A stretch of DNA of 64,000 nt, taken from the sequence record ON529860.1; one strand, written 5' to 3'. This document shows, one piece after another, positions 35,678 to 55,236 of this stretch (positions within the stretch are counted from its first letter, which is position 1; each line of letters opens with the position of its first letter). The notes beneath the pieces were generated by a model. The model ran no database searches. It had not been told where the DNA came from and saw only the letters and a program-made list of their open reading frames with translations. A program made the translations under genes and the position numbers.

Positions 35678-35730
35678 CACTCGTGCGCTTCGCGCCCTCG
35701 TGACTGGCTTCGCCAGCCCTCCTTCGGAAC
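35678..35730. repeat. 53-bp triple-hairpin dispersed element, copy 1
   Basis: Homologous to copies at 36503, 44784, 55075 with compensatory stem changes. Confidence 0.8.
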
Positions 35731-35757
35731 TCCCTGCGGTCGCTACTGCGTGAACCT

Positions 35758-36020
35758 GAATCGGTCGTGTCGGTCGAAACGGTCAAGGGTTGGTAGGGCT
35801 GAATCGGTTGTGTCGGTCAAGACGGTCAAGGGTTGGTAGGGCTGGATCGGTCAAGGGTTGGCAGGGCTGGATCGGTCAGGGGTTGGCACGGCTGGATCGG
35901 GCATAAGCGATCAAGGACGGGCATGGCTGGATCGGTCAAGGCCTGGCACTCGAACGTGTTCGAGCCGGCTGGATCGGACATCCTCGTTCAAGGCCTGGCA
36001 CTCGAACGTGGTCGAGCCGG
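35758..36020. repeat. tandem 25-bp units (CGGTCAAGGGTTGGYAGGGCTGGAT) plus 43-bp and about 52-bp duplications
   Basis: Units at 35780,35823,35848,35873; CAAGGCCTGGCACTCGAACGTG twice. Confidence 0.9.
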
Positions 36021-36502
36021 TTGGATCGTAGCCTCGCCCAGCAGCGTTTCAGCACCACCGTCTGGACGGCGTCACAGCACTCGGACCTCCACGACGGGGC
36101 GGCCGAACCGAGTCCAGGGCGACCGGAGGTTGGCTGGCGAAGCCAGTCACGACGGAACGCCGCAGGCGTTCAGGAGTGGAAGCGAGCGATGACATTAGGA
36201 TTTGTCACCGTGCCCTTACAATCTGTCTCTGTCATTTTCCACGGCGGTGGTTGACAGCACCACCGGCAGTCCGTAGACAACCTGGGCCGGGAGCGTTCTG
36301 CTCAGTCCGTGACCGGCTCTGGAAGAGAAGAGCGGCCGGCGCCTCCCGTACAGAGGATGCTGGTCGCTCCGATCTCACCCCTGGCAGGCTCGGACTTTCC
36401 TGAACTTTCCTGAAAACTATCCCAACATTCCGAAGGGTCCCGCAGGACCACCGCCGTGTTGCATGTGGGACCACCGTCCGCATCGCTGCGCCAGGGCGGC
36501 TT

Positions 36503-36555
36503 CACTCGTGGGCTTCGCCCCCTCGTGACCGGCTCCGCCGGCCGCACCTCCGGTC
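36503..36555. repeat. 53-bp triple-hairpin dispersed element, copy 2
   Basis: Alignment with the other three copies. Confidence 0.85.
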
Positions 36556-36736
36556 TCCTGGTTCCGACAAGGCCTGGCACGGCTGAAGCGCAGGACCGGC
36601 CGCTGCGTCAACACGGTGGTCCGTCAAGGCCCGGCACGGCCGTGTATTGCTTAGACTTCCCTGAAAACTATCCCAACAAATCGCAACACCCGAGCCGGTC
36701 AAACCGATTTTCAACCGACTCGGGCTCACGCCGGAC

Positions 36737-37573
36737 CTATCCTGCCTTGGCGCGGGCGATCAGCCGCGAGATGTCCGCCGGCCCCTGCCCCAGGTGCTCG
36801 CCCAGGGCGTCCCGGAAGGCTTCGCGCCAGGAGCGGTTTCGGCGGTATCCGGGGATCGCGTAGAAGGTGCGGATCGCCGTCATGATCGTATGCTCGTCGG
36901 CGTCCTCGGGCAGCCCGTAGACGATCTCGCTGATGATGGCGGGGCTCGGCGCGATGATGATCTCGGGATCGGCGCCCGGCGCGACGTAGCGGTGGTGGAT
37001 GGTGGTGAACTCGCGGTGGTTCGGATGGATCGCGATACGATCGGTCGCCTGCCCGGCCTCGGTGCGTCGCCGGATCACCTCGGCCAGCATCAGCCCGACC
37101 TCGTCCTGGGTGAAGCGGGATTCGCTGCCGCTGGCGCCGTGGTGGTGATGCGGCGTCAGGGGTTTGAAGTGGACGACCTCGTCGTCCTCGTCGAGCCAGT
37201 CCACGCCGAGCAGGTCCGCGCCGGTCGAGCCGGCCCCGCGCACGGTGGTGTGCTGATAGACCGGCCGCAGCCGCAGTTCCGCCCGGACGCTGACGACGTC
37301 TGACAGGTCGAAGCGCCGGAACATCGGGTACTTGCCGCCGGCGTGGTCCTGCTTCTCCATGCGGTCGGCGGTGCGCACGATGGCCTCGCCGATATAGCGG
37401 GCCATCTGGGCGGTGCCCAACGGCAGGCTGATCCGGGCGCCGTGGTCGATCTCCAGCGTATGGAGGGTGGCGTCGGGATCGTAGCCGGGGCGCTTTTCGA
37501 GGATGCGCACGGTCATGCTGGCGCCGTGCGTGCCGGAGAAGTGCATCTCCTCCAGGGTCGTCGTCTTTTTCAT
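36737..37573 (-). CDS. hypothetical protein, 278 aa
   Basis: GAGAG RBS; long ORF. Confidence 0.8.
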   Translation of the reverse strand: MKKTTTLEEMHFSGTHGASMTVRILEKRPGYDPDATLHTLEIDHGARISLPLGTAQMARYIGEAIVRTADRMEKQDHAGGKYPMFRRFDLSDVVSVRAELRLRPVYQHTTVRGAGSTGADLLGVDWLDEDDEVVHFKPLTPHHHHGASGSESRFTQDEVGLMLAEVIRRRTEAGQATDRIAIHPNHREFTTIHHRYVAPGADPEIIIAPSPAIISEIVYGLPEDADEHTIMTAIRTFYAIPGYRRNRSWREAFRDALGEHLGQGPADISRLIARAKAG

Positions 37574-37750
37574 GGTGGTCTCTCATCACAGGCTCTAGGC
37601 CCGAGCCGACCATGAGGGGCGCTGCCGACGCTGTCAATCCGTGTCAGGTTTCCTGAACTTCCCTAAGCCGTATCCCAAATCTCAGGAGAGGCCGGCGCGT
37701 CCAAATCGATTTTCAACCGACTCGGGCTCGCGCCGACCCTTTGTCTCGGG

Positions 37751-38053
37751 TTAAGCCTCGGGCGCTGCCGAGCCTTCGGGGATCGTCGAGCCGCCGTTCA
37801 GGACCGCGTCGAACTGGTCGATCAGGTCCCAGATCGGCTTCATCTCGCCGTCGATCTCGACCTCGTCCAGGTTCCAGTCCGAGGCGATGCGGGCAAGCTG
37901 CCGGGCGACGCGGACCGCTTCGAGCGCGTCGAGCAGACGCTGGTAGTCGTGATCGTCCAGGATCAGGTCCTGGTCGTCGGGGCGGACGCCGATCAGGCGG
38001 GTGCGGATGAAGCCGGCGAGGATGTCGGCCTGGGTCGGGGGTGCTGATGTCAT
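37751..38053 (-). CDS. hypothetical protein, about 100 aa (ORF may extend to 38248)
   Basis: Phage-like composition from MTSAPPTQ. Confidence 0.6.
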   Translation of the reverse strand: MTSAPPTQADILAGFIRTRLIGVRPDDQDLILDDHDYQRLLDALEAVRVARQLARIASDWNLDEVEIDGEMKPIWDLIDQFDAVLNGGSTIPEGSAAPEA

Positions 38054-38369
38054 TGACAATCTATGTCGGGTATCTTGACCTGGGTCAAGAGGATCGCCGC
38101 CCGCCCCGGTGCATCGGGGCGGGCGCGCGGCCTGGTCAACCAGCAAACCCAGGCGGGCGCACCACAGGGGCGCCTCGATCTTGCGCTCACCGAAGAGCGC
38201 CACGGCCGCCGCAGCTAGGAACGGAACTGCGCGGACGGACCTGGACATTGCCGTCGATCCTGACAAAGGTCAAGCGAAATCCCCGCATGTCCACAGGCAC
38301 GTCGCCCAGACCGGTCAAGCGAAATGTCCGTATGTCCACAGGCGCGTGGGCGCGGTGGTCCAGGCAAGC

Positions 38370-38510
38370 AAAAACCCGCCGGCGTGGGGCCGGCGGGTTC
38401 TCAGGAGCGCTTCTGTTCAGGGAAGCCGTGCTCGTGAAGAGCACCGCAGCCGCCTATGCCGGGTATGGGTGCATGGAAGGAGTCGCGGACCCCGGCGCGA
38501 CCGGACCTCG
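38370..38510 (-). ncRNA. candidate sRNA (promoter, hairpins, anti-SD-like CUCCUUCC, terminator)
   Basis: TTGACA at 38533-38; terminator at 38370-38399; no convincing ORF. Confidence 0.4.
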
Positions 38511-38607
38511 ACAATGCCATACTGACAGTGTGTGTCAATGGGGCCGACATAGAAAAAGACCCGCCGGCGAACCGACGGGCCTGGATGCTGTTCGTCTCTG
38601 GGGTGCC

Positions 38608-38637
38608 TTAGCCCCAGGGGAATCCCTCGCGGTACAT
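38608..38637 (-). CDS. 9-aa micro-ORF MYREGFPWG in its own transcription unit
   Basis: GGAGG 5 nt upstream; TGGACA-N17-TAGACT promoter; terminator near 38552-38582. Confidence 0.4.
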   Translation of the reverse strand: MYREGFPWG

Positions 38638-38711
38638 GCGGGCCTCCACTCTGGATAAGTATGACAAAAAGAAGTCTACCACGGCGGCTGCGGTGTGTCC
38701 AGATTCACAGC

Positions 38712-38828
38712 AAAAGGCCCGCCGGCGAACCGACGGGCCTGGATCGATCAAGATGCTGGGACCTGTAAAGGACCACTTGCTCGGAAGCCGAAGCCCCGGA
38801 CGACACAGGATACGCGTGTCTTGATCCC
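38712..38828 (-). ncRNA. candidate structured sRNA closed by GAUCAAGA/UCUUGAUC stem
   Basis: TTGACA-N17-CATAAG promoter; internal hairpins incl. UUCG; terminator at 38712-38740. Confidence 0.45.
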
Positions 38829-38939
38829 CTTATGGGGCGAACCGCTGCGGGTGTCAAGAATCCAGGCAGCCGAGATTCCTCCCGAGGGCGGGCGCCGCGT
38901 CAAAAGACGGGGCAGTCGGCGTTGCGGCTGGTGCGGCCT

Positions 38940-39392
38940 TTAAGGGGTCCCGAGCACGGTAACACGGCGGACGGCGGTCGCATAGTTGTCGAACGCATTG
39001 CCTCGGATGCAGAAGGAGACGATGTCCCCCGGCTTGAACCGGTTGTCAGCCTCGGCGATCCAGGCGTCCCCGTCGACAGGGCCTGTGCGGCGCGCGTAGA
39101 GGCGTCCCGAGGGGTGGGTGCGCACGATCCCCCTGTAGCGGTTGTTCCTCAGCTTACGAACATCAACCGCGTGGACGGCTCCGTCCTCGGTGACCTGGAG
39201 ATCGAACGCCACGCGCTCCCCCGCATACAGGGGTGGGCGGTCGGGGCGGAACGCCTGGTCCGTGAGCAGGGGAACGACCACGTCTCCTGTGGTGGTGTCC
39301 GTGATGATGCTATAGGCCCCATCGCGCCGGTCGAGGTAGCCATCCCTGACGTATTCCTTGCGGAAGGCGTACTCTTGTGGTGTCTCAGTCAT
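38940..39392 (-). CDS. protein with two cold-shock-like OB domains, 150 aa
   Basis: LYAGERVAFDLQVTEDGAVHAVDV and FKPGDIVSF resemble the CSD C-terminal strands. Confidence 0.65.
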   Translation of the reverse strand: MTETPQEYAFRKEYVRDGYLDRRDGAYSIITDTTTGDVVVPLLTDQAFRPDRPPLYAGERVAFDLQVTEDGAVHAVDVRKLRNNRYRGIVRTHPSGRLYARRTGPVDGDAWIAEADNRFKPGDIVSFCIRGNAFDNYATAVRRVTVLGTP

Positions 39393-40105
39393 TAGTCTTC
39401 CCTTCTCTCGGGCACGCCGAACACCGCGTCCGGGTATTGGTCGTGGCTGTAGTCCTCGACCGCGTCGAAGCCTTGCTCCTTGGCGATCTCCAGGGCCTCG
39501 TCGGCGCTGCTGGCGCGGATCGTCCACTGGTCGCGGTTGGTCCAGGTCACGTCGATGTCGTAGAGGCCTTCGCCTTCCGGCTCAGGTTCCGGCGTCGGGT
39601 CGGGCACGGTGATCGTTATGGCGGTGGTCTCGGCCGCCTGGCCCTGGACCGTTTCCCGAAGGGTGACGACACCTTCGTTGGTCGCCGAGAGGACTTCGAC
39701 ACGGTGACCCTGGAGCGCGCTCAGGCGCCCTTCTTCTCTGGCCGCCGCGATGACCCGATTGAGGTAGTAGCGCGACACCCCGTCCATGAAGACCTTGAAC
39801 TCGGGCTCCAGCAGCACGCGGCGGATGAAGGCTTCGTCGGTCACATAGGCGCCGATGTTCGACCGCAGGAAGCGGTGGCGGTAGTCCGGCAGCGTCTCGG
39901 GCGCGACCGCGATCAGATCATGCGCGACCAACTCGGACCCCTCGCCCCGCAGGGCGAACTCGACCTGGGCGTTGCGAGGCAGATCGGTCAGGCCCTGCTG
40001 AGCGCCGTCGGCGACGCGCACCGTTCTTACTGTGGGTTCGCGCTGTGCGATGAACCAGCGGTTGTTGAACTGGAAGAGTCCACCGCTATTAGGGCGTTCG
40101 GTCAT
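39392..40105 (-). CDS. protein with N-terminal cold-shock-like domain, 237 aa
   Basis: LPRNAQVEFALRGEGSELVAHDL segment. Confidence 0.6.
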   Translation of the reverse strand: MTERPNSGGLFQFNNRWFIAQREPTVRTVRVADGAQQGLTDLPRNAQVEFALRGEGSELVAHDLIAVAPETLPDYRHRFLRSNIGAYVTDEAFIRRVLLEPEFKVFMDGVSRYYLNRVIAAAREEGRLSALQGHRVEVLSATNEGVVTLRETVQGQAAETTAITITVPDPTPEPEPEGEGLYDIDVTWTNRDQWTIRASSADEALEIAKEQGFDAVEDYSHDQYPDAVFGVPERRED

Positions 40106-40160
40106 GGGGTTTCCTTGGTGATCAGATCGGCGTTGAAGTGGACGCGGCCCCACCGATCGA

Positions 40161-40367
40161 TCATGGGTAGACCTGCTTGACGTCGGCTGCTCGGTCGCCG
40201 CCCTCGCACACAGTCGCCAGGCGATAGGAGACAATGTCGCCGGGCGCGAAGACCTTGTCGTCCACGCCGCCTTCAATGGGAAGCCAATCCTCATAGCCCG
40301 ACACCTGGGTGGTCAGGAAGGCGTTCGGACCTGCGCGGTGCAGGATTCCTTGAAGACGTTCGGTCAT
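40161..40367 (-). CDS. single cold-shock-like domain protein, 68 aa
   Basis: LQGIL...AFLTT...FAPGDIVSYRL...GGDRAADV; CSD length. Confidence 0.65.
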   Translation of the reverse strand: MTERLQGILHRAGPNAFLTTQVSGYEDWLPIEGGVDDKVFAPGDIVSYRLATVCEGGDRAADVKQVYP

Positions 40368-41440
40368 GCGGCGGCCTCGATCTCGACCGCGAAGAGGTGA
40401 CCGTCCGTCGCACGCTCCAGGCGATAGGTGACCGCACCCATGGTATCAGGGTAGAAGCCGCCTGCCACGGCGATCCAGTTCTGGTAGTTGGACTCCTGGG
40501 TCATCACGAAGACCTGTCCGGCAGAGCGGATCAGGATGCCGCGCTTGCGCTCCAGGATCGACGTCTCGACCGGGTCACGCGGCTGCACGGTGACGACCCG
40601 CTCACACCCATAGACGAGGCGCGTGCTGAACCGCACCCGCGTGCCGTTCGGGAATTCGGTCGTGGCCGATTGGATCGGGATCAACCGCGCCGTGCCTTCA
40701 ATCGTAGCGACGAACCGCCGGTCCCCCACATGCATGTAGAAGCCGTTCTCCATCTCAGGCGCAGCGCCGTCGGCCTGGCCGCAGGCGTCATAGGTGCTGT
40801 CCGGCAGGGGCTTCCTCGGGGCGCAGGGTCGGAGGGCGGTCGCGTAGCGCTGCCCGGAATTCCCTTCAATCACCGCGTAGGAGACGCGTTCGTGCCGGCG
40901 CAAACCGAGTTCCTGGCCTGCGCTCAGCCTGATCGCGTCGCTGCCGTCCTCGGGGTAGATCACGGCCCAGGCGTGCGTCATGCCCGGCGTGTCCGAGGGT
41001 TCCCGCTGCATTCCGATGATGCCGGTGAACCGGGCGGGCTCCCGCACCGTCTCGGGCGTCACGCCCTGAATGAAGAACTCGCCGCGTTCCTGCACCTCGA
41101 ACAGGTAATCTAGGCGCTTGCGCTCGTCGGGCGACCCATAGGAACGCCCCTGACTGCACCAAGAGATCATGCCGGCCCACTCGATGAAGTTGACCACAGC
41201 CTGGGTGCGCGGCGTGCCGTTGTTCATCCGGGCGCCCAAAGCGAGCCCCATCAGTTCACGCACCGCCAGTTGACAGAGCGCGCCGCGAGTCTGGCATCCC
41301 TTCAGACCCAACTCCAACGCGCGTTCGATGCCGGCGCGCACCGACAGCGAAGCGCGCGCCTTGAAGTAGTCGGCCTTCATCATGTCGTCGTGCAGATACT
41401 GGATCAGGGCGGCGTGCTGCTCGCGCGTCTTCTCGGTCAT
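40364..41440 (-). CDS. 358-aa protein with three C-terminal cold-shock-like repeats
   Basis: RFTGII..WAVIYPEDGSDAI..LRRHERVSYAVIEGNSGQRYAT plus two further similar units. Confidence 0.7.
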   Translation of the reverse strand: MTEKTREQHAALIQYLHDDMMKADYFKARASLSVRAGIERALELGLKGCQTRGALCQLAVRELMGLALGARMNNGTPRTQAVVNFIEWAGMISWCSQGRSYGSPDERKRLDYLFEVQERGEFFIQGVTPETVREPARFTGIIGMQREPSDTPGMTHAWAVIYPEDGSDAIRLSAGQELGLRRHERVSYAVIEGNSGQRYATALRPCAPRKPLPDSTYDACGQADGAAPEMENGFYMHVGDRRFVATIEGTARLIPIQSATTEFPNGTRVRFSTRLVYGCERVVTVQPRDPVETSILERKRGILIRSAGQVFVMTQESNYQNWIAVAGGFYPDTMGAVTYRLERATDGHLFAVEIEAAA

Positions 41441-41451
41441 CGGGGCTCCTC

Positions 41452-42276
41452 TTGTCTGTCAACGAACGACGTAGCAGCCGCCGTCAGGATATGCAACAGC
41501 GATTGACAGGATCGGCGGCACACGCTTATGGTCGCGCCATGATCCTGACCGACCTCGCCCAGCATAACCAGAAGCGGCTGAAGAAGCACGACGTCATGTC
41601 GATCGCCCGCTCGGTGAAGAAGCACCTCTCGCGCCTGACCTCCATGGGCTACACCGCCGGCGCCGTCTCTGAAGGCGAGCGCGGCATCGTCAAGGTGACC
41701 ACGCCGCAGGGCCGGCGCTTCGAAATCGCCGTGCGCGAGATTTCCTGCGACGAGGAGATCATGCAGGCCCAGGCCTATTGCGCCGCGCTTGACGACCTCG
41801 ATCCTAAGAATCTGCCGCCGGTCTCCGGGCCTGCCCCCGAGGGCGTCATCCAGACGCTCGCCGCCGAAGCGCGCGGCTGCCCGATCAAGACCTGGGTCTC
41901 CGAACCTCAGCCTGCGGTGATCACCGGCAAGGCGACGCGCGTCCTGGAGCGCCGAAGCAGCCTGGCTGGGCTCAACATCGACGGCGAGTACGTCTATCGC
42001 AACTACGCGGTCAACTATGACGGCCGGACCTGGGACGACCTGTCGCCGAGCGAACGCCTGTCGTGGGATGATCAGGCGGCGCTGCTCGTCGGCCGCCTCG
42101 CCCGGAAGAAGGCCCCGGAGCCCGTCGCGGCGGTCAAGACGCCCGAGCCGGTCACCGGCCGCGACCTCTACATGACGATGATCGACAACTCCGGCGTCCA
42201 CTGCAACCGCTTCCCCGCCTGGAATGAACTGGACGAGGCTGCCCAGGCGGACTGGAATCGAAAGGCGCAGAACTGA
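41452..42276 (+). CDS. hypothetical protein, 274 aa (start uncertain)
   Basis: Long ORF coupled to next gene. Confidence 0.7.
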   Translation: MSVNERRSSRRQDMQQRLTGSAAHAYGRAMILTDLAQHNQKRLKKHDVMSIARSVKKHLSRLTSMGYTAGAVSEGERGIVKVTTPQGRRFEIAVREISCDEEIMQAQAYCAALDDLDPKNLPPVSGPAPEGVIQTLAAEARGCPIKTWVSEPQPAVITGKATRVLERRSSLAGLNIDGEYVYRNYAVNYDGRTWDDLSPSERLSWDDQAALLVGRLARKKAPEPVAAVKTPEPVTGRDLYMTMIDNSGVHCNRFPAWNELDEAAQADWNRKAQN

Positions 42277-43076
42277 TGCACTGGGTCCTGCAAGAGAACA
42301 TGTTCGGCGAACTCGCCTACGCTGAGTTCTGCCGCACGCTGGGCCGGCTCGGGCTGCCCTATTCGGTCCACCGGGTCGTCCCCTTCATCGGGACCTTCCT
42401 GGAAGAACCACAGATCGAAACGAACAACGCCATCTGCATGGGCTCCTACTCGATGCGCTACAAGGCCGCCGAGATGGGGTGGAACCCTGGCGTGTTCGAT
42501 CTGGAGCCGTTCGACTTCCCCGTCCAGCACGCCCACTGGGGCGCCAACATGCTGAACGCGGCGTCTCGCGTCCTGCCGCTGCGCGAGGTCGACCTGGGCG
42601 AGGCGCGCGCCTTCATCCGCCCGAGCCGCGACACCAAGGCCTTCCCGGCGAAGGTCTATGACCCGTTCGAGTTCCGCGACTGGCAGGCCAAGGTCGAGAA
42701 GCTGGGCGACATGCCTCTGGCACTGCTGGACCGGAACACCCTGGTCCAGGTCAGTCCCGTGCGGGAAATCTATGAGGAATACCGCTTCTGGGTGATCCGG
42801 GGCGAGATCGTCTGCGCCTCGCTCTACAAGCGCGGCGATCGGGCGCTCCATGACGCCGACGTGCCGCTGGCCTACCACGAGTACGTCCGCGCCATGATCG
42901 ACATCTGGCAGCCGCAGGAGGCCTTCGTGATCGACGTGGCGAACGTGCCCGACGACGGCGACGGCTGGCGCGGGATCAAGATCATCGAGATCAACTCGAT
43001 CAACTCGGCGGGCTTCTATGCGGCGAACCTGCCGAAGCTGGCGATGGCGTTCGAAGACGCCTTCAACGAGGACTGA
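42276..43076 (+). CDS. ATP-grasp domain protein, R2K/DUF4343-like
   Basis: FIRPSRDTKAF, EEYRFWVI, FVIDVA, KIIEINSINSAGFY motifs. Confidence 0.85.
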   Translation: MHWVLQENMFGELAYAEFCRTLGRLGLPYSVHRVVPFIGTFLEEPQIETNNAICMGSYSMRYKAAEMGWNPGVFDLEPFDFPVQHAHWGANMLNAASRVLPLREVDLGEARAFIRPSRDTKAFPAKVYDPFEFRDWQAKVEKLGDMPLALLDRNTLVQVSPVREIYEEYRFWVIRGEIVCASLYKRGDRALHDADVPLAYHEYVRAMIDIWQPQEAFVIDVANVPDDGDGWRGIKIIEINSINSAGFYAANLPKLAMAFEDAFNED

Positions 43077-43077
43077 C

Positions 43078-43986: not shown

Positions 43987-43988
43987 CG

Positions 43989-44363: not shown

Positions 44364-44470
44364 CCATCGCCCTCGTGATCCTCATTCCGCTGGCTGTTTC
44401 CGTCCTGCTTGAACTCATGTGCTGTGTGTCAGCGCCGAACCCTGTCCTCCCTGGAGACGAACGCCCGTGA
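44360..44470 (+). CDS. small membrane peptide, 36 aa
   Basis: GTGA overlaps on both sides; hydrophobic N-half. Confidence 0.45.
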   Translation: MTIALVILIPLAVSVLLELMCCVSAPNPVLPGDERP

Positions 44471-44763
44471 CCCGACGCAAGCGCTTCGACGCTTTGAAGC
44501 ACGGCGATCTCTTCTGGCTGGACCTGGACAAAAGCGTCGTCGCGCAGGCGTATGGCGTCACCGCGTTGACCGCGCCTGACTGGGTTCAGGTTCATTACGT
44601 CCTGCCCGGCGACCCGGTCCCCTATCGACGCACGGTCCTGGCGGCGCACCAGGTCTTCATCCTGTCGAAACCACCGAAGGGCGAAATCAAGGAACTGAAG
44701 GCGTTGAACGGATTGCACGGGACCGCTCTGCCCGACGACACCGCCCTGGTGTTCGGCCAGTAA
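44467..44763 (+). CDS. hypothetical protein, 98 aa
   Basis: GGAGA RBS, GTG start. Confidence 0.7.
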   Translation: MTRRKRFDALKHGDLFWLDLDKSVVAQAYGVTALTAPDWVQVHYVLPGDPVPYRRTVLAAHQVFILSKPPKGEIKELKALNGLHGTALPDDTALVFGQ

Positions 44764-44783: not shown

Positions 44784-44836
44784 CACTCCTGCGCTTCGCG
44801 CCGTCGTGCCCGGCTCCGCCGGCCGCACCTCCGGTC
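44784..44836. repeat. 53-bp triple-hairpin dispersed element, copy 3
   Basis: At a convergent operon junction. Confidence 0.85.
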
Positions 44837-44956
44837 GCCTGAAGTAGACGACGTGGTTGACTCAGGCGATACGCCGATGCGGCTCACGCCCGGCACCGCC
44901 TCTCAGGATCGCCGGCTGAAACGTCGAACCGCCGCAGGGCTAGGCCCGGCACGCCA

Positions 44957-45424: not shown

Positions 45425-45551
45425 GATAGCCCCTCTCGTTATGGGTTCCGCTGAACCTGTCCTCGGTCCCAGGACACAGGACACCAGGCCCGGCACAGCG
45501 ACTGCGTCACCGTGGCGGCGCAGCACTCGAACGCAGTTCGAGCGGCACGCC

Positions 45552-45827
45552 CTATTCGGCAGCCTCGACCGGATCGCCTTCCCCGTTCAGGCCCGGCACG
45601 ACCGTAACGACCTCTCGGCCGGACCGCCTGCACGTCTCCAGCAGCGTCTCCTCCAGTCGACCGGCCCGGTTCCTGAACCGCCACACGATGTCGACCTGGC
45701 GGATGAAGGGCTGGTTGTTCAAGATGCGGTCAGCGCGTGCGCGGGCCGAGTCCATGTCGAACGCCTCCGACAGCGGCTCCAGCCGCTTGACGTAATGCTG
45801 TTCGTGATGACGACGGGTCCCGATCAT
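45552..45827 (-). CDS. hypothetical protein, 91 aa
   Basis: ATGA coupling. Confidence 0.65.
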   Translation of the reverse strand: MIGTRRHHEQHYVKRLEPLSEAFDMDSARARADRILNNQPFIRQVDIVWRFRNRAGRLEETLLETCRRSGREVVTVVPGLNGEGDPVEAAE

Positions 45828-47026: not shown

Positions 47027-47034
47027 TGGCCCTC

Positions 47035-48485: not shown

Positions 48486-48760
48486 GAAGGCTCCTGGATT
48501 TCGCGGTGGCTCAAGCGCGCCCAGACGAAGGCACGCATCCGTCCGGCGCCGACGCATTGTTCGCGCGAGGCGTTCGGGGCGGGCTCGGTGCAGATCATCT
48601 GCTCGGCGTCCGCGAGGTCCTTGAGCACGGCGCGGCGTTCGTCGACCTCTCCCTGCTGGGTCTGGCTGGAGACCCCGGCGGCGAGGCCGACCACGAAGAT
48701 GATGGCGGCGGCGAGAAACGCCACCACCGTCACCAAGGGGGTAGTCCGGCTGTCGCCCAT
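48482..48760 (-). CDS. membrane-anchored hypothetical protein, 92 aa
   Basis: N-terminal TM segment. Confidence 0.7.
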   Translation of the reverse strand: MGDSRTTPLVTVVAFLAAAIIFVVGLAAGVSSQTQQGEVDERRAVLKDLADAEQMICTEPAPNASREQCVGAGRMRAFVWARLSHREIQEPS

Positions 48761-49368
48761 CAGATCGTCTCCAGCTTCTTGCCCGTCAGGGCTTCCAGCG
48801 CGGCGGCGGCCGCGCGATAGTTTTCCAGTCGGAACACCGACGTGGCGGGTCCGCCGACGAAGCCGTGGTCGGTCCAGATTTCATGGCTGCCGTCTTCGGC
48901 CGCGTCGTAGCTGCGCACGACGGCCGCGAACGGGGCCAGCGCCGCGATCGCCTGTTCGAGCGTTTCCACCGAAGGGGTGGGCGGCGGCGTGTAGGGGCGG
49001 ATGTAGGAGATGATGCACTGCCAGGCGACGTCGGGGAAATCGCAGGCGCGGCCGCGCATCACCGCCCCCGTCACCAGCCAGGCCTCGATCACCGTCTCGC
49101 CGACGGGGTTGACGCCGCCTGTGAACTTCAACCAGCCGTCCCGACGGGGCCGCCCGATGAAGGTGTAGTAGGTCAGCGGTCCCGCCATCCCGCCGATGCC
49201 GATGGCGCCGCCCTTCGCGGCGCTGGGGTCCCGCTCAAGGGTTCGGATCGCACCGAAGCACGGACGGCCGCGATGCGTCGCCCATACAAAATCGCCCACC
49301 TGGATATGAGCCGAGTTCTGGATCGTCAGGCGCTCGCCGAGCGCGGGGAGGGTCATGGTGTCGGTCAT
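48760..49368 (-). CDS. hypothetical protein, 202 aa
   Basis: Coupled ORF. Confidence 0.75.
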   Translation of the reverse strand: MTDTMTLPALGERLTIQNSAHIQVGDFVWATHRGRPCFGAIRTLERDPSAAKGGAIGIGGMAGPLTYYTFIGRPRRDGWLKFTGGVNPVGETVIEAWLVTGAVMRGRACDFPDVAWQCIISYIRPYTPPPTPSVETLEQAIAALAPFAAVVRSYDAAEDGSHEIWTDHGFVGGPATSVFRLENYRAAAAALEALTGKKLETI

Positions 49369-49733
49369 GCTTTAAAGCCTGCGTTTCCAATGGACAGGCC
49401 CACGGCGGCGGCCATGCGGTCGCTGATCTCGCGCAGCGTGGTGGTTTCGCCGGCGATGAAGGTGTTGCGCTCGGCGACCCATTCCCGGACCAGAGCCTCC
49501 AGGTCCGGCGCGTTGTGCGGACGGATCACGAAGGGCTCGTCGCAGGGGTCCTCGAAAATCGAGTCCTTGGCCTTGGCGTACCACTGGTAGAGGTCGGTCC
49601 CGTCGTAGCGGAACAGGCGCGGGTCGCGGACGCCGACCTTCGGCATCTGGTTGTAGGCGAAGGATTCCATGTCGGGGACGTGGGTCCGGTCCGCCGAAGC
49701 CGGGAAATCATGCGTCAGGTGCGTGTCGCTCAT
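49365..49733 (-). CDS. hypothetical protein, 122 aa
   Basis: GGAGGA RBS; promoter at 49761. Confidence 0.75.
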   Translation of the reverse strand: MSDTHLTHDFPASADRTHVPDMESFAYNQMPKVGVRDPRLFRYDGTDLYQWYAKAKDSIFEDPCDEPFVIRPHNAPDLEALVREWVAERNTFIAGETTTLREISDRMAAAVGLSIGNAGFKA

Positions 49734-49783
49734 GCGGTCCTCCTTCGTGGTCCGGGGGTGTGTAAAGGAATGATTTGCGGCTG

Positions 49784-51373
49784 TCAACTCTTTGCGGCTG
49801 CCTGATCGTGCTTCACAAGCGACTCGATGAAATCCGCCCACAGCCCCTCGTTGACGATGTAGTCGTCTCGCCGCCGCAGCAGGTCCGACCACTCGGCCAT
49901 AGACCGCCACGGGTTTTCCTCGTCCTCCGGCTTGATCTTCAGTTCGTCCAGCACGATGCGGGCATGGGCGTGCGCCTGGCGGGCTCCGGCTTCGGCCTGT
50001 TTCCAGGCGTTGGTGTCCAGATGGCGCTGGCCGGGATCGTAGAAGGCCAGGACGAAGTTGAGCGCGCCCCAGCACTTCTCCAGCGCCTCGCTCGCGGCCT
50101 TGTAGGCGTCCGACCGAACGACGCGCCCTGCTTCCAGAATCTCTTCGACCACAGCCTCGAATTCCCGCTGGGCGATGGGGTCTCCGGGCGTCCGGTATCC
50201 CGCACGGTCCTCCAACCCCAGGGCCTTCCACCACCCGTAGCGGCGCCCGATGCGGTACAGGGCTTCGGCGGCGACCTCGACAGCCGGCACGTCTTCCGAC
50301 AGCACCAGAGTCGCCTCGGTCTCCAGTTCCTGCGCCGACGCGTCCAGACCGGCGTTGTAGTCCGCCGCGCCGCGTTTCAGGTAATCCGTCCAGTCGGTTT
50401 CGATGCAGCGCTCGAAGTAGGCGGGATCATCCGCCGGCAGGGCGGCGTTCGTGCGCCAGCCGGCCCGGAACGCCGCGAACTGATCAGACGCCGCTTGCAG
50501 GCCGATCATCGTCCACAGGTCATCCGTCAGCAGGCGGATGGCGCCCACGGGCGCCGACTTGTGCGGATGGTCGAACAGGCCGCCCGCGATCAGGTCGAAC
50601 AGGTGATCGGCAGACCGCAGGCCTTCCTTCGGCCCCGCCGTCGCCTGCGCCAGGATGTCGCCGATCCAGGCGTTCATCTTCTTGCCGCTGGCGAGCGCCG
50701 CCGCCTGGGTCGGGTCGACGGCGTTGCGCAGCAGCGGCCACAGGGCGTTCGCCACGTCGTCCGCCATCAGGTCGTAGTCGCCGGCGCGGCGGTGCGTGAT
50801 CAGGTCCTTCACCGTCGCTTTCAGCGCCGCCTCATCCTTGAACGCCGGGGTATGCGGCGCCGCCTTCAAGGCCTCGGACGCCATGTCGCAGGCGCGCAAG
50901 GCGGCGGCCCGGAACTTCTCGTCGCCGCTATCGCAGCGGGCGATCCACAGCTTGTCCTGGCACTCGCGCAGAGCGCCGCACAAGCGTTCCACGGTGAGCG
51001 GGGCGGACAGCGCGTGCGCCCACTTCCGAAACTCCGTCGCTGTTTTTCGGCACTGCGCCGCGACCGAGCGGCTGTTGTCCGCCCGCTTGGCCTTGAAGGG
51101 GTCAGGGTTCTGCGCCCAGTCAGCCGCATCCTCGTCGTAGCGGACGGCGGCGTCGTCATTCGATTCCGCCTGACGCAGGCAGAAAGCGTGCAGGGCGGCG
51201 ATGCTGGGATCGGCGGAGAGTTCGGCCGCGACAGCGTCGGCCTGGGCCTGTGCAGGCTCGCCATAGATGGCGAAGCCTTCGCCGGGCTCCCAGTGGACGG
51301 GGTAGTCGGCGCCCCACCAGGTGACTTCGCGGTCGTTGCGGACCCAGCCGAGCGGCGTGCGGGTGTTGGTCAT
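49784..51373 (-). CDS. hypothetical protein, 529 aa (probably multi-domain)
   Basis: AAGGAG RBS; long ORF. Confidence 0.8.
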   Translation of the reverse strand: MTNTRTPLGWVRNDREVTWWGADYPVHWEPGEGFAIYGEPAQAQADAVAAELSADPSIAALHAFCLRQAESNDDAAVRYDEDAADWAQNPDPFKAKRADNSRSVAAQCRKTATEFRKWAHALSAPLTVERLCGALRECQDKLWIARCDSGDEKFRAAALRACDMASEALKAAPHTPAFKDEAALKATVKDLITHRRAGDYDLMADDVANALWPLLRNAVDPTQAAALASGKKMNAWIGDILAQATAGPKEGLRSADHLFDLIAGGLFDHPHKSAPVGAIRLLTDDLWTMIGLQAASDQFAAFRAGWRTNAALPADDPAYFERCIETDWTDYLKRGAADYNAGLDASAQELETEATLVLSEDVPAVEVAAEALYRIGRRYGWWKALGLEDRAGYRTPGDPIAQREFEAVVEEILEAGRVVRSDAYKAASEALEKCWGALNFVLAFYDPGQRHLDTNAWKQAEAGARQAHAHARIVLDELKIKPEDEENPWRSMAEWSDLLRRRDDYIVNEGLWADFIESLVKHDQAAAKS

Positions 51374-51384
51374 CAGGGGCTCCT

Positions 51385-51933
51385 TCAGATCATGTCCATT
51401 GCGCGCAGACGCGCGGCGGCGCCGTAGACCCGGACGGTCTCACGGGTGATTCGGGGGTCGCTCAGGCTGCTGGTCACCAGAGGCGCATGGCATTCGTCGG
51501 TCGGCTCGAACACGCCCAGCGACATGGCGCGCCCGGTGTAGATTTGCTGGAAGGACAGCGGGAACGGGTAGGGGTAGTGCCCCTCCGGCCTGTCGCCGGC
51601 GCAGAACATGCGCAGATAGCCGAGGGGCTCGGGGTCGCGCACGTCATCGACGCCGGTCTCCTCGCGCAGTTCTCGCAGCGCGGCGTCCAGCATTCCTTCG
51701 CCGGCCTCGATATGACCGCCCGCCATCTCGATTCCGCGCCGGGTGTTATGCGCCAGGACCACCGCCCAGGTGTCCAGATAGGGGACCATGAAGGCGGTCC
51801 GGGTCAGGTCTTCAGGGGCCTCGTCGTCCGACAGGATCAGATCAACCCGGTTCGGGCGCGGCAGCCAGTCGACGTCAAACTCGGTGCGTGCGATCACGGC
51901 GCCGGGCGGCAAGGTGGTCTTGGGGGTGGGCAT
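51385..51933 (-). CDS. Nudix hydrolase
   Basis: Nudix box GGHIEAGEGMLDAALRELREETGV. Confidence 0.9.
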   Translation of the reverse strand: MPTPKTTLPPGAVIARTEFDVDWLPRPNRVDLILSDDEAPEDLTRTAFMVPYLDTWAVVLAHNTRRGIEMAGGHIEAGEGMLDAALRELREETGVDDVRDPEPLGYLRMFCAGDRPEGHYPYPFPLSFQQIYTGRAMSLGVFEPTDECHAPLVTSSLSDPRITRETVRVYGAAARLRAMDMI

Positions 51934-52099
51934 CGGCGCTCCTTCAACGGTTCCTTCGCCGTGTAAAGGAACGGTGTGAGGAATACAAGCAGAACTTCTT
52001 GCCGCCTGACAAGATTCATGTCACTCAGGATTTACCGTCAGGGATGACCCCTGCCGGCGCCAGGCGGCTGCGGCCGTCGATCGAAAGGACCACCGCCCC

Positions 52100-53284
52100 A
52101 TGAGCGGCACTGACCTGCGCGTCCGCGCGCACATCACCTATTCCGTCGCGTCCTACCGAGATACGGGCAAGACCGGCACGAGCCGGGAAGTAGGCTCTGG
52201 TTTCACGGCCGACGTCGCAAACGAAATCGCTAAGGCCGTGCATGCCGTCGCCGACGCCCCGCGCGACCTGACCCTGGTCAACGTCACCGACGCCACTTAT
52301 GAAATCGCGAAGGCTGCGCATCACGTCAGTCAGATCGTCGATGCCCCTGAAGGGACAGCCTACCTCATTGAGCGCCTGTCCCCGCGCCAAGTCCGCCTGA
52401 CCGAAGTCACGCCGCAAACGCAGCGCTACACGCTCGACGCCACGGTCTTTGACCTGAAGAGCAGCCTGGGTAACCTCCAGACCGTCGCCGATACGGTCAA
52501 GGATTCCGTCATGCGTGAGATCAGCCGCATCAACCTGCCCGAGCGGTGGGATGACCTGTCGAGCGAGACCACCCGGCGTGGGCTGGAGGCCTTCATGGCG
52601 GTCCAGACGGTGGGCAAAGATGCCTGGCGGGATCATGAGATCGAGGGGATGGTGAATCGCATCGCTCAGCGCACCGGCAAGGCCAAGATCGACCTGCGGC
52701 GTATGTTTGAGAACGCCCAGGAGCGGGTGATGGAAGCCAAACGCATCCTGGCGGACGCCGTACCCACCTCGGCGCCCCTGACCGCGCGTGAAGAACACTA
52801 CTGCAAGAACCGCGCGAAGGGCTGCACGCCCCACGACGCCGCGCGCTATGCGGGGTTCCTCAACGATCCGACGTCGCCGTTCAATACCGCCCTGCTGGAA
52901 AACTCACCCCCGATCCAGGCGCGGATCGCGGAACTGATCACCGCCCAGGCGCCAGCCGACGCCTCAACCACGATCAAGACGCCGTCGGCAGACGCCTTCC
53001 GTAAAGGCGTCGTCCAGAAGACTGCTGAGGCGGAGTTTGCGGTGGGGGCCGCCGTCTGGGAAGTTCCGGCCGATCAGGTGCCGCCCAACGGCTCCTACCG
53101 CCTGGACAACGCCACGCAGGAGTTCTTCGCCATGAACATCGGCTTCTACGGCATGACGGTCGAAGCGGCCGCCAAGCAGATGAGCCTGCCGCTGGAAACA
53201 GCGGACGGTCTGATGCAGATGCCGTCGGTGAAGGCGCGGATCAAGTTCTTCCAGCGCTGCGCCGCCTGGGGCGAACGCGGATGA
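52100..53284 (+). CDS. hypothetical protein, 394 aa
   Basis: AAGGA RBS; long ORF. Confidence 0.8.
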   Translation: MSGTDLRVRAHITYSVASYRDTGKTGTSREVGSGFTADVANEIAKAVHAVADAPRDLTLVNVTDATYEIAKAAHHVSQIVDAPEGTAYLIERLSPRQVRLTEVTPQTQRYTLDATVFDLKSSLGNLQTVADTVKDSVMREISRINLPERWDDLSSETTRRGLEAFMAVQTVGKDAWRDHEIEGMVNRIAQRTGKAKIDLRRMFENAQERVMEAKRILADAVPTSAPLTAREEHYCKNRAKGCTPHDAARYAGFLNDPTSPFNTALLENSPPIQARIAELITAQAPADASTTIKTPSADAFRKGVVQKTAEAEFAVGAAVWEVPADQVPPNGSYRLDNATQEFFAMNIGFYGMTVEAAAKQMSLPLETADGLMQMPSVKARIKFFQRCAAWGERG

Positions 53285-53628
53285 AGCGCGTCTTCGACGA
53301 CCATGGGCTCTGGAACCCGGAGGCTCACGCCGCCGGGCTCCGGGTGTCTCCTCTGGTGAAACAGGCGTTCGAACTACTGCTGAACGAAGGCTACAATCCT
53401 CGCGAGGCGCAGGCCCTGATCACCGTCACCGTTGATGAAGAGACCCTGGACCGCGTCCTCGCTGTCAAGCATCGGCTGCGCCTAAAACAGGCGGGCCACG
53501 CCGAGGCGGAGCGTGTCGGCAACCTGCGCCGGCATGTGCCGTTCCCGCCGGCCGACCACCCCGTCTTCACGCCCGAGCATAAGGCGAAGGCCTTCGACCT
53601 GGTGCGGCCTGAGGGAGAATCGACGTGA
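53281..53628 (+). CDS. hypothetical protein, 115 aa
   Basis: ATGA coupling. Confidence 0.75.
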   Translation: MKRVFDDHGLWNPEAHAAGLRVSPLVKQAFELLLNEGYNPREAQALITVTVDEETLDRVLAVKHRLRLKQAGHAEAERVGNLRRHVPFPPADHPVFTPEHKAKAFDLVRPEGEST

Positions 53629-53903
53629 GCCCTGGGTACAAGGCGGTGGCCGTCCAGGACGGCGTCCTTCGAAACCGCTACGGATACGAGCAACGTGTCG
53701 CGCCGGGCTGCTTCACCATTGCGGACGAGCACGACAACCCGATCCGCACCCATGACGGCTTCGCGGTCTTTGCCAGCCTCAAGGAGGCGGCCTGGTGCGC
53801 CGAGTTGATGCAAAGTGCCTATTTCGAGGGCGAGGCCAGCGTCAAGGCGGCCATGCGGAACCTGCTCGACATCCCTGAACCACCGGACGACGAAGACGGC
53901 TGA
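53625..53903 (+). CDS. hypothetical protein, 92 aa
   Basis: GTGA coupling, GAGGGAG RBS. Confidence 0.75.
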   Translation: MSPGYKAVAVQDGVLRNRYGYEQRVAPGCFTIADEHDNPIRTHDGFAVFASLKEAAWCAELMQSAYFEGEASVKAAMRNLLDIPEPPDDEDG

Positions 53904-53907
53904 AGGC

Positions 53908-53936
53908 TTGACGGTATGGAGGCGGCCGTGCTAAAC
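53908..53936 (+). promoter_or_regulatory. sigma70-type promoter TTGACG-N16-GCTAAAC
   Basis: Matches the Caulobacter housekeeping consensus TTGACG...GCTANAWC. Confidence 0.75.
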
Positions 53937-53944
53937 AACGCCCC

Positions 53945-53977
53945 ATGCTGACCGCCCTGAGACTCAGGACTGCCTAA
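53945..53977 (+). CDS. leader micro-ORF MLTALRLRTA (AGA and AGG codons)
   Basis: ATG at the expected start site (leaderless); stop overlaps terminator. Confidence 0.5.
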   Translation: MLTALRLRTA

Positions 53978-54003
53978 GCGCCCCAGACCACCGGGGCGCT
54001 TTT
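53976..54003 (+). terminator. intrinsic terminator directly before the tRNA
   Basis: AAGCGCCCC-N8-GGGGCGCTT followed by TT. Confidence 0.75.
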
Positions 54004-54005
54004 CG

Positions 54006-54080
54006 GCGTCTATGGTGTAGCGGACAGCACATCGATCTTCTAAATCGAGAGCCCTGGTTCGAATCCAGGTAGACGCGCCA
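54006..54080 (+). tRNA. tRNA-Arg (UCU)
   Basis: Acceptor GCGTCTA/TAGACGC, D stem GTGT/GCAC with A20, anticodon loop CTTCTAA, T loop TTCGAAT, encoded CCA. Confidence 0.95.
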
Positions 54081-54134
54081 CTGTTCAGTCGTCAGTCATA
54101 TTGACAATGACTGTCTGGATGGTAATCAACCGAC

Positions 54135-55100
54135 ATGGCTAAGTTGACTGGGCGTGAGGAAGAAGTCGTTCGGCGCGTGCGCGCCGGCGAACGGCAGACG
54201 GAAATCGCACGCGATCTTGGGGTGACGATCTCGTCGATCAGTCTCTGTGTTCGTCGCCATGCCCCTGAACTCAGTCGAACGAACCCGACCCCCGCTCAAC
54301 GCGCCGTCATCATCAAGGCAATCAAGGCGGGCATGCCCGTGGCGGAAGCGGCGCTGAAATACGGCTATGCCGCCCATACGTTGTCGTTGTGGCTCAAGCG
54401 CGGTGTGGGCACCCGCGAGCCCGTCGACGCCGCCTACATCGTCCAACTCTACGAGACCGGCGACTACACCATGACGGCGTTGGGGGCGGCCTACGGCGTC
54501 TCGCGTGAACGCGTCCGCCAGATCATAGCGGCGGCGAACCTCTCCAAGTCCCGGCGAGAGATACAAATTCAACGTGTGGCTTCCCAAGCCGCCGACATTC
54601 GCCAGCGCTACCTCGCGGGCGAGGAGCCCGCTGACCTGGCGCTGGCGTTGGATGTGGATCGGCCGGTCATCGAGTTTTACGTCGAAGGGTGCTCCAGGCA
54701 GGCGGCGGCGCGCATGTTCAACTATGAGGACATGATCGCCGACTATCGTTCTGGGACTTACACCACCACCGCCCTGGCTGAAAAATACAACACCAGCCAG
54801 ACCAACATCAGCGCAGTGCTCCAGCGCCACGGGGTGGACACCAAAGAGGCGCGCTGCGCCGAGAAACGCCGGCATATCCCAGAGCGCTTCCGCGCCAAGT
54901 GCAGCAGCCTGCGCCAACTTCTCGACACCACCGCCGTCGTGACGTGGTTCCAGGAGGATGAGAGCCGCACGGCGCTCGACCTCGCAGAACTCTGCGGAGT
55001 GACCCCGGCGACGATCTTGCGCATCACCACCACCGCCGGAGTAAAGACGGGGCGCAAGCGCCGACGTCGAAAGCCACTCCTGCGCTGCGCGCCGTCGTGA
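54135..55100 (+). CDS. protein with six tandem helix-turn-helix motifs, 321 aa
   Basis: QTEIARDLGVTISSIS, VAEAALKYGYAAHTLS, MTALGAAYGVSRERVRQ, PADLALALDVDRPVI, TTALAEKYNTSQTNIS, ALDLAELCGVTPATIL. Confidence 0.85.
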   Translation: MAKLTGREEEVVRRVRAGERQTEIARDLGVTISSISLCVRRHAPELSRTNPTPAQRAVIIKAIKAGMPVAEAALKYGYAAHTLSLWLKRGVGTREPVDAAYIVQLYETGDYTMTALGAAYGVSRERVRQIIAAANLSKSRREIQIQRVASQAADIRQRYLAGEEPADLALALDVDRPVIEFYVEGCSRQAAARMFNYEDMIADYRSGTYTTTALAEKYNTSQTNISAVLQRHGVDTKEARCAEKRRHIPERFRAKCSSLRQLLDTTAVVTWFQEDESRTALDLAELCGVTPATILRITTTAGVKTGRKRRRRKPLLRCAPS

Positions 55101-55127
55101 CCGGCTCCGCCGGCCGCACCTTCGGTC
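55075..55127. repeat. 53-bp triple-hairpin dispersed element, copy 4
   Basis: Overlaps last codons of the HTH gene at a convergent junction. Confidence 0.85.
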
Positions 55128-55236
55128 GACCCCACGCTCAGAATGACCACGCCCGGCACAGCCCTTTCGGCTGTTCCCGTTCGGGATCATCTCGCCCTAA
55201 AAGATAACGCCCGGCACGATCTGCTCCCGAACGGGA

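Follow-up and report, generated by a model that had tools for sequence, protein, structure and literature searches.

RepB', the AEP primase of the IncQ plasmid RSF1010, primes on two 40-nt hairpins in oriV, ssiA and ssiB, and starts at T32 within a GTG on the 3' side of the hairpin (PMC8567376). At the pRN1 origin, and at the putative origin of Bordetella phages, a stem-loop lies just downstream of an AEP-SF3 replicase gene; in pRN1 an intact stem-loop is required and not its sequence, and the ORF904 primase starts at GTG (PMC4234260). Natural examples of the so-called mini-hairpin DNA motif are found in the G4, St-1, and alpha3 primase origins, in RSF1010 ssiA (CCGAAGG), and in N4 promoters (GCGGAGC) (PMC13037366). 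For the phiCbK group of phages no primase or SSB has been recognised: the 2012 phiCbK genome paper reported a T7-like polymerase, and no primase, SSB, or origin (PMC3556154). Here, we describe a repeated element of three small hairpins, 51-57 bases long, in the genome of the Brevundimonas jumbo phage vB_BpoS-Papperlapapp (ON529860.1; 356,874 bp; Dolichocephalovirinae; host B. pondensis). The window, meaning the whole 64,000-nt stretch that was analysed, spans record positions 62001-126000, so that a window position equals the record position minus 62,000; positions below are window positions unless marked otherwise. The window's large-terminase protein and a 12-kb piece of its DNA are 100% matches to this record. 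We tentatively read the element as an ssi-like priming or origin signal in single-stranded DNA that serves a phage AEP primase-helicase and folds on the complement of the written strand.

An earlier note on this DNA had placed four copies in the window, two of them at convergent junctions. All four are present where it had them, with none expected by chance, and the junction copies, 3 and 4, lie 10.3 kb apart (Table 1). A fifth copy, inverted and absent from that note, is also inverted in phages Kabachok and Marchewka; copies 1 and 5 bracket a tandem-repeat array. Using nhmmer together with a covariance model derived from 17 copies, we found 10 copies in the whole Papperlapapp genome, nine of them on the + strand. 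Over all loci the covariance model gave 49 hits, 44 of them distinct. In the model-based alignment of these hits, 99.5% of paired cells form pairs, against 87.5% in shuffles, and double changes occur in 7 of the 13 pairs (51 cells versus 11.3 expected), a level reached by none of 500 shuffles; when the partner columns were slid, the covariation signal was lost.

This alignment is fitted to the covariance model, and three independent checks agree with it. A plain MAFFT alignment supports the same fold. RNAalifold adds a 3-bp CAC:GTG helix that encloses hairpin 1, was missing from the earlier note, and takes the compensatory form CGC:GCG in two copies. In the orthologous copies of Marchewka, hairpin 2 changes from CTGGC/GCCAG to CTGCC/GGCAG, and in Marchewka copy 2 hairpin 1 changes from GGC/GCC to CGC/GCG along with an outer G:C to C:G. 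The stem covariations described before (GCGC/GCGC, CTGGC/GCCAG, and TCC/GGA changes) were correct on rechecking. Single-copy thermodynamic z-scores were not significant in the GC-rich background, so the structure rests on covariation.

The loops are constrained, though less uniformly than the claim that every loop is TNC. That description holds for all 15 loops of the window copies, while the wider family has other loops: the commonest loop of hairpin 2 is the 4-nt TGCC (21 of 43 parsed copies), and TTTC and TTG each occur once on the written strand. Free variation of the loops was not what we found, since more than 40 further copies show the same constraint on which loop occurs. The sequence and the length (4-7 bp) of hairpin 1 are free to vary, and hairpin 2 and the flanks CACTCG/CTCGTG are nearly invariant. 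As in ssi-type signals, covarying hairpins on one strand are accompanied by invariant flanking nucleotides.

We then assessed how the element is distributed. Among isolated phages it occurs only in CcrColossus, CcrPW, and seven Brevundimonas jumbo phages, with 3-6 blastn-detectable places per record across these nine genomes; it was undetected in phiCbK-type phages in the search of isolate genomes. About 30 further true copies lie on phage-like contigs, including small temperate-phage contigs, from scans of IMG/VR, genome, and metagenome collections. Pattern scans of these collections returned mostly chance matches in GC-rich DNA, and copies were accepted only with an upstream CACTCG hairpin or a covariance-model match. 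The element goes without mention in the phiCbK genome paper and in Rfam; Rfam 15 gave only a tRNA at gathering score in the window and nothing relevant at E <= 10 in 35500-36800.

Orientation is strongly uniform rather than random: nine of ten copies in Papperlapapp and six of six in CcrColossus lie on one strand, the comparison genome being most of that Caulobacter phage, which has known physical ends. Uniformity likewise holds for contigs with two or three copies, the sole exception being a 267-kb contig from a metagenome-assembled genome (L076) with two opposed copies. Relative to neighbouring genes, the Papperlapapp + copies are sense in four cases and antisense in three, and two (copies 1 and 2) stand in a 1.2-kb noncoding gap that also holds the genome's single - copy; the Colossus copies are sense in one case, antisense in three, and within a divergent region in two. 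The orientation of the element is independent of local transcription. Positions are syntenic across Papperlapapp, Marchewka, Kabachok, Colossus, and PW; between Papperlapapp and Colossus/PW this applies to the cluster beside a 398-aa gene and to the copy at record 245903, although the large terminase of Colossus/PW is only 54% identical to that of Papperlapapp. In both Papperlapapp and Colossus all copies lie within the right ~45% of the physical genome, towards the terS/terL end, and the densest cluster (copies 1/5/2) is 5-9 kb from terS/terL.

In small phages, the element adjoins a replication gene. On five temperate-phage-like contigs of 30-40 kb, which carry serine or tyrosine recombinases, element and iterons lie 240-450 nt past the 3' end of a primase-helicase gene or of one intervening open reading frame (ORF). 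The layout is the gene (1000-1300 aa), then iterons (GTGTCCA six times, GATGTCC, CGTCCCGAC three times), then the element on the strand opposite the gene; on contig L012 the gene is flanked by two element copies. Because it stands beside short repeats just after a primase-helicase gene, the element is most likely a signal for replication in single-stranded DNA and not an RNA terminator. Towards its C terminus the protein is an SF3 helicase of the P4/D5/Cch type (DUF5906 or DUF927, TIGR01613, PDB 6k9c). Its N-terminal 600 aa carry invariant DxD, SH, and Cys/His motifs and resemble RepB_primase clusters in language-model features (score 0.95). Sequence profiles from Pfam and PDB did not recognise this N-terminal primase domain, and the fold search did: the predicted structure (mean pLDDT 78) has an AEP fold whose best match is the S-2L PrimPol (Foldseek E 8e-5; VIA-align Z 9.3), followed by RepB' bound to initiator DNA (Z 6.6). 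The structural prediction supports identification of the small-phage protein as an AEP-primase/zinc-finger/SF3-helicase.

A nearby primase gene, which the earlier note had named as something to look for, was therefore found in the small phages, and the jumbo phages have an ortholog. The Papperlapapp protein is 48.6% identical over 1200 aa to that of contig L049 and keeps all invariant DxD, SH, and zinc-motif residues; Colossus gp183 is its counterpart, and the gene is conserved in all Dolichocephalovirinae. Judging by the predicted fold and the kept motifs, replicons bearing the element encode a putative cognate primase. Elements and primase-helicase gene occupy opposite strands in every genome or contig checked, and the jumbo-phage copies are all downstream of the gene. 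A coding sequence annotated as 'DNA primase TraC' (record 54297-55208, L003:4297-5208, outside the window) was considered and rejected: it encodes an ArdC-N plus zincin metallopeptidase protein, an ArdC-like anti-restriction/ssDNA-binding protein and not a primase.

The complement of the written strand is proposed as the folding strand, and DNA as the folding molecule. On the complement, hairpin apexes read GCGNAGC, GCGNNAGC, or CCGNAGG, that is, the mini-hairpin DNA motif, with counts of 21 for GCGGCAGC, 12 for GCGGAGC (the second-hairpin apex in 12 copies), 5 for GCGCAGC, 3 for GCGAAGC, 22 for CCGGAGG, and 20 for CCGAAGG. GCGNAGC by itself is common on both strands genome-wide and uninformative; adjacent pairs alone are specific to the element, and clustered mini-hairpins were found only in its copies. 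The invariant CACTCG and CTCGTG flanks become, on the complement, tandem 5'-GA/3'-AG mismatches in a C-GA-G context plus one more G.A, whereas the same positions on the written strand are C.T or T.C. G.A mismatch motifs of this kind are stable. Because the linkers become G.A mismatches on the complement, the first domain, as read from the sequence, would be a continuous rod, CAC-GA-G-R-stem-GNA-stem-R-C-GA-GTG. According to Hirao's 2026 review, the DNA mini-hairpins d(GCGAAGC) and d(GCGAAAGC) melt at 76.5 °C, the RNA form at 39 °C, and GCTTTTGC at 33 °C, figures that also apply to the GCGNAGC/GCGNNAGC class; mini-hairpins resist nucleases and bind SSB poorly, and in RNA, triloops of the GNA or UNC type are weak (PMC13037366).

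The proposed mechanism is that of a cis-acting DNA signal that would work when one strand is single-stranded. On the complement, the rod of hairpin 1 would be followed by hairpin 2 (CYGGC-GNA or GNNA-GCCRG) and hairpin 3 (CC-GNA-GG), with G.A mismatches and GNA/GNNA loops stabilising three compact hairpins. This fold would mark a site where the phage AEP-primase/zinc-finger/SF3-helicase starts or assists DNA synthesis. Together with adjacent iterons, the element may form origin-like modules, namely the copy 1/5/2 cluster and the region after the small-phage primase-helicase gene, and solitary copies may be extra priming or loading sites for the same strand.

RSF1010 offers the closest parallel. 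Both its ssi sites and the element are signals of ~40-57 nt in which a hairpin apex is a mini-hairpin motif, and the ssiA apex CCGAAGG is the third-hairpin apex in 20 element copies. Both adjoin iterons, in an origin in RSF1010 and in a putative one here, and both have conserved single-stranded nucleotides beside a hairpin, including GTG at the 3' side. The AEP domain of the phage enzyme has RepB' with initiator DNA as its second-best structural match, and iterons are enclosed by copies 1 and 5 in inverted orientation, which recalls the placing of ssiA and ssiB on opposite strands. Unlike RSF1010, the element has three hairpins instead of one, with no sequence similarity past the apex; it occurs in 6-10 dispersed copies nearly all on one strand rather than as one pair; its putative primase forms one protein with a zinc finger and an SF3 helicase, whereas RepB' is a separate protein; and its replicons are phage genomes of 30-357 kb. 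G4-type origins (G4, St-1, alpha3; plasmid ssi), which are primed by host DnaG, likewise have three adjacent hairpins on one strand of single-stranded DNA and contain mini-hairpins of the GCGAAAGC or GCGTTAGC type that SSB leaves uncovered (PMC13037366). A host-primase route is conceivable here because neither an SSB nor a DnaG-type primase has been recognised in this phage group (PMC3556154). In contrast to the element, the G4 origin is ~140 nt long with longer stems and occurs once, in a ssDNA phage; the two share no sequence homology, and the proposed folding strand of the element lacks a conserved CTG start triplet.

The small-phage contigs match the layout of pRN1 ORF904 and of Bordetella BPP-1/BIP-1, in which a structured element also lies just 3' of an AEP-primase plus SF3-helicase gene; pRN1 differs in having one ~100-nt stem-loop rather than three mini-hairpins and in lacking adjoining iterons and dispersed extra copies. 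Early promoters of the N4 virion RNA polymerase share with the element a 5-bp stem, a 3-nt loop, and an apex of GCGGAGC or GCGAAGC, and are recognised while single-stranded (PMC13037366). They have one hairpin rather than three and cluster at the early genome end, and the element, unlike them, is not oriented with downstream genes. No N4-like or other single-subunit RNA polymerase was found in the annotation or among the proteins scanned, a subset that included the large ORFs (lectin-like, tail, primase-helicase, cadherin-like). From the orientation, the annotation, and these scanned proteins, the N4-type hairpin promoter put forward in the earlier note gains no support. Its broader proposal of a strand-specific signal in single-stranded DNA fared better: the repeat is structured, strand-specific, and oriented independently of transcription, priming may be its use, and the N4 and HUH variants are not supported. 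Integron attC sites and CRISPR-repeat mimics were also rejected, by eye, on spacing, size, and flanks.

The GCCYGGCAC boxes that the earlier note had attached to each copy proved to be a local feature. Of 12 matches in the window, where 3.2 were expected, 11 are on the + strand; genome-wide there are 18 on + and 6 on -, and ten of the + matches make up the five window pairs. These pairs exist at their described positions, four of them after the four + window copies, and the boxes are absent at the other five + genome copies and at copies in other phages. In Marchewka, three AAGGCYTGGCACGGCTGGATCGG units stand between copies 1 and 5, and the 25-bp and 52-bp tandem units of Papperlapapp carry the same core; the boxes are therefore the cores of iterons in repeat arrays local to this region, and not an integral part of the element. 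The element thus stands beside iterons or a replicase gene both in the small-phage contigs and in the window cluster of copy 1, iterons, and copy 5, and these iteron-element regions may be origins. In Colossus/PW and on contig L010, CCTGGCAC lies directly 5' of one copy. A hairpin of the form CTCGAAC-N3-(G)TTCGAG occurs three times beside boxes (35951-35966, 36003-36018, 45528-45545), and a 19-nt CCTGAAAACTATCCCAACA motif occurs twice around copy 2 (36404 and 36656). A sigma-54 reading of YGGCAC was set aside by eye, the -12 element being absent or misplaced.

Several observations weigh against the priming reading. Copies are confined to the right ~45% of the genome and none is oppositely oriented in the left half, which is odd for a general lagging-strand signal and does not fit priming sites spread along the whole replicon; ten copies per 357 kb are also too few for ordinary Okazaki priming. 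None of the jumbo-phage copies is near the primase-helicase gene, the nearest being 12-16 kb away, and phiCbK-type phages keep that gene (46% identity) with the element undetected. In the long type of hairpin 1, G.T wobbles on the T-N-C strand become A.C mismatches on the proposed folding strand, and GCGCGC-type stems allow an alternative register with CTC/CTT loops. Many copies directly precede promoters that fire outward, and a TTGAC -35 box often stands 3-13 nt downstream of the element's complement, so that a transcription-linked role is possible. Public 'RNA' runs yielded only short DNA-like contigs of related phages and no transcript ends.

A role in RNA is the main alternative: in transcripts, the hairpin cluster would serve as a terminator (factor-dependent or of the hairpin-cluster kind) or insulator, stabilise mRNA 3' ends, or be processed or bound by protein, and it would act in either orientation at gene and operon boundaries. 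We consider this rather unlikely. Copies do lie exactly at gene boundaries, in some cases abutting a TGA stop codon (record 245903 and Colossus gp206), at the convergent junctions of copies 3 and 4, or between the end of an upstream gene and the -35 box of the next promoter (records 155729 and 202681, and phage Gurke). The T-N-C strand has room for G.U wobbles, with 9 such cells against 3 non-pairs, the long type of hairpin 1 folds ~3.4 kcal/mol better there as RNA, and a terminator role has been proposed for hairpin clusters without a U tract (PMC8355165). Rho-independent terminators resemble the element in being GC-rich hairpins at gene ends and convergent junctions. An intrinsic terminator does not fit, however: no copy has a T run after it on either strand, none of the six Colossus copies is among the rho-independent terminators annotated there with TransTermHP, and 91 nt away from one copy stands a terminator of this annotated kind. 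The evident terminators of the phage use UUCG loops and a U tract, unlike the triloops of the element, which is in addition conserved in sequence outside its stems. The element is thus not a canonical RNA terminator, which speaks against the earlier note's counter-possibility that it acts only as a terminator. A hairpin-only role would leave unexplained the uniform genome strand amid mixed gene orientation and the near-invariant hairpin 2 and linkers across phages with 54%-identical terminases, and GNA/UNC triloops are weak in RNA (PMC13037366). Moreover, the gp440 promoter has its -35 box downstream of the Colossus/PW cluster copy and so does not transcribe that copy.

The uniform strand would suit a polar DNA signal of another kind, such as a barrier or pause site for the replication fork, a block to nucleases or Chi-like shielding of the part of the genome packaged last, a checkpoint in packaging or ejection, or a cruciform bound by a protein that recognises duplex DNA, for instance the winged-helix neighbour. 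The single orientation within the right ~45%, towards terS/terL, in Colossus and Papperlapapp would fit, as would the position of the densest cluster beside the tandem winged-helix protein gene and the nuclease resistance and poor SSB binding of mini-hairpins (PMC13037366). Such a signal nevertheless seems improbable: it has no identified partner or precedent, it does not explain why the element adjoins the primase-helicase gene and iterons in small temperate phages of circular organisation, and a dimeric duplex-binding protein would not yield differing first-hairpin sequences within one genome. A selfish or mobile repeat (REP/BIME-, MITE-, or PATE-like), spread by an HUH enzyme (RAYT/TnpA-Y1) or another enzyme acting on single-stranded DNA and biased by insertion into the lagging-strand template, is the least credible of the explanations. 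The element does share with REP/BIME repeats mobilised by RAYT and with IS200/IS605 PATEs a short, extragenic, hairpin-rich, imperfectly palindromic form with conserved flanks and strong strand bias, and those repeats act as single-stranded DNA, as is proposed for the element; genomes of unrelated types carry it, those of jumbo phages and those of 30-40 kb temperate phages, suggesting horizontal spread; its copies look homogenised within genomes, Marchewka copy 2 being identical to Papperlapapp copy 3; and TGA at its edge on both strands goes with frequent ORF ends. Yet the Papperlapapp and Colossus/PW positions are syntenic despite 54%-identical terminases, which argues against a mobile repeat, place counts are similar in all nine isolate genomes, there are only 6-10 copies per 280-357 kb, and five small-phage contigs share one place, after the replicase gene and beside iterons. 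No target-site duplication was seen, though none was sought systematically, and no HUH, Y1, or RAYT domain was found among the ~30 candidate proteins scanned; the HUH/REP-like substrate of the earlier note thus finds no enzyme among these candidates.

Table 1. Coordinates of the element, associated repeats, and neighbouring genes (window positions unless marked as record or by phage).
Feature	Position	Strand	Remarks
Element copy 1	35678-35728	+	P1 + hairpin 1, 35678-35702; hairpin 2, 35704-35716; hairpin 3, 35720-35728; model match 79 bits
Element copy 5	36122-36178	-	Inverted; 7-bp first hairpin GAACGCC TGC GGCGTTC; 56 bits
Element copy 2	36503-36554	+	Parsed extent, covariance model
Element copy 3	44784-44835	+	20 nt past stop of + coding sequence 44467-44763; convergent junction
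Element copy 4	55075-55126	+	Overlaps final 26 nt of + coding sequence 54135-55100 (multi-helix-turn-helix protein); convergent junction
Papperlapapp copies, whole genome	Record 97678, 98503, 98122(-), 106784, 117075, 144438, 155729, 179775, 202681, 245903	+ unless marked	
CcrColossus copies	163475, 210794, 223278, 255507, 271546, 272178	-	All on one strand
Iteron array between copies 1 and 5	35756-36030	+	43-bp, 25-bp (CGGTCAAGGGTTGGCAGGGCTGGAT), and 52-bp units
GCCTGGCAC boxes in last two array units	35941, 35993	+	Each with inserted CTCGAAC-GTG-TTCGAG hairpin
AAGGCCYGGCAC iteron-core box pair after copy 2	36572-36580, 36629-36637	+	
GCCCGGCAC box pair after copy 3	44888-44896, 44944-44952	+	
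Further GCCCGGCAC box pair	45488-45496, 45591-45599	+	No adjoining element; CTCGAAC-GCA-GTTCGAG hairpin between
GCCCGGCAC box pair after copy 4	55151-55159, 55209-55217	+	
Primase-helicase ortholog	Record 262217-265873 (L007:12217-15873)	-	Outside window; 1218 aa; annotated hypothetical
Element-promoter modules	Record 155729, 202681; Gurke L171:2440-2560; PW L026:1450-1520		
398-aa conserved gene beside copy 1/5/2 cluster	34352-35548	-	Tandem winged-helix domains at N terminus
Other repeat arrays	25319-25534, 7738-7922, 8971-9078, 26533-26716, 25174-25308		

Genes next to the element were also inspected. The 398-aa gene adjoins the element in CcrColossus (gp440), CcrPW, and one uncultured viral contig as well; its product has no Pfam, PDB sequence, or enzyme-fold match apart from its winged-helix domains, and may be an iteron-binding protein. 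The coding sequence 54135-55100, annotated 'RNA polymerase', encodes 321 aa with several helix-turn-helix/sigma-70 region-4-like domains and is not a polymerase; it ends inside copy 4, beside a box pair. In the element-promoter modules, a TTGAC(A/G) -35 box comes within 3-13 nt after the complement, together with a conserved CATTCCTTTAC motif, and the promoter fires away from the element; an upstream 'GACCACCGCC' box at other copies resembles a degenerate form of this -35/CATTCCTTTAC module. Some ORFs (record 155746-155748; the 3' ends of Colossus gp291 and gp390) read through the complement of the element, one stopping at a TAG made by an unusual TAC loop of hairpin 1 and the others at the TGA in GAGTGA at the element edge. 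GC skew tracks gene orientation and indicates no origin.

Several further features lie outside the subject of the element. Window positions 1-24600, which by analogy with Colossus are probably a terminal-repeat or early region, hold ~35 small - genes, each in its own cassette with a conserved upstream motif (- strand), GTTAAC-CTCTT-GTTAAC-GAATC...CTAG, and a canonical terminator of GC stem, UUCG loop, and U tract (for example 11692-11745). The other repeat arrays of Table 1 include a 16-bp GCGTCAAATC unit repeated 12 times, a 36-bp unit repeated five times, and a 32-bp GTTAACCTTAACG repeat. A 24/25-bp AGGGTCCCCGG..AATTC unit occurs in two places and is a candidate packaging or terminus site because one of them is just downstream of terL. 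The large terminase gene (27076-29874, -) contains an intein (Intein_splicing/Hint + Terminase_6C). At record 284841-285096 (L007:34841-35096, -), among tRNAs, lies an unannotated gene for a permuted, two-piece tmRNA of alphaproteobacterial type. A Ro60/TROVE+vWA homolog at L007:37503-38888 is flanked by noncoding regions of ~1 kb, in which Rfam gave no Y-RNA hit.

The element, the primase-helicase, and the candidate origin modules bear on the question of how jumbo phages of the phiCbK/Colossus type begin and prime DNA synthesis. Should the priming reading be wrong, the element would still be an undescribed, widespread structured repeat of Caulobacterales phages that merits annotation. Should it hold, the ssiA/RepB' paradigm would extend from small plasmids to phages of up to 357 kb, and the element would show selection acting in nature on three mini-hairpin DNA motifs in a row. 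A stronger proposal, which we regard as unlikely, is that the element represents a new class of sequence-specific priming or loading site, used as a single iteron-side origin in small phages and as 6-10 co-oriented sites over 150 kb in jumbo phages; one strand of that half of the genome would then be copied from a few fixed start points, in a strand-asymmetric, leading-strand-mode or strand-displacement programme undescribed for a large dsDNA phage. The analysis identifies, under a hypothetical annotation, an AEP primase-helicase in a group of phages that had no recognised primase, and this enzyme, the element, and the origin modules together make up a directly testable model.

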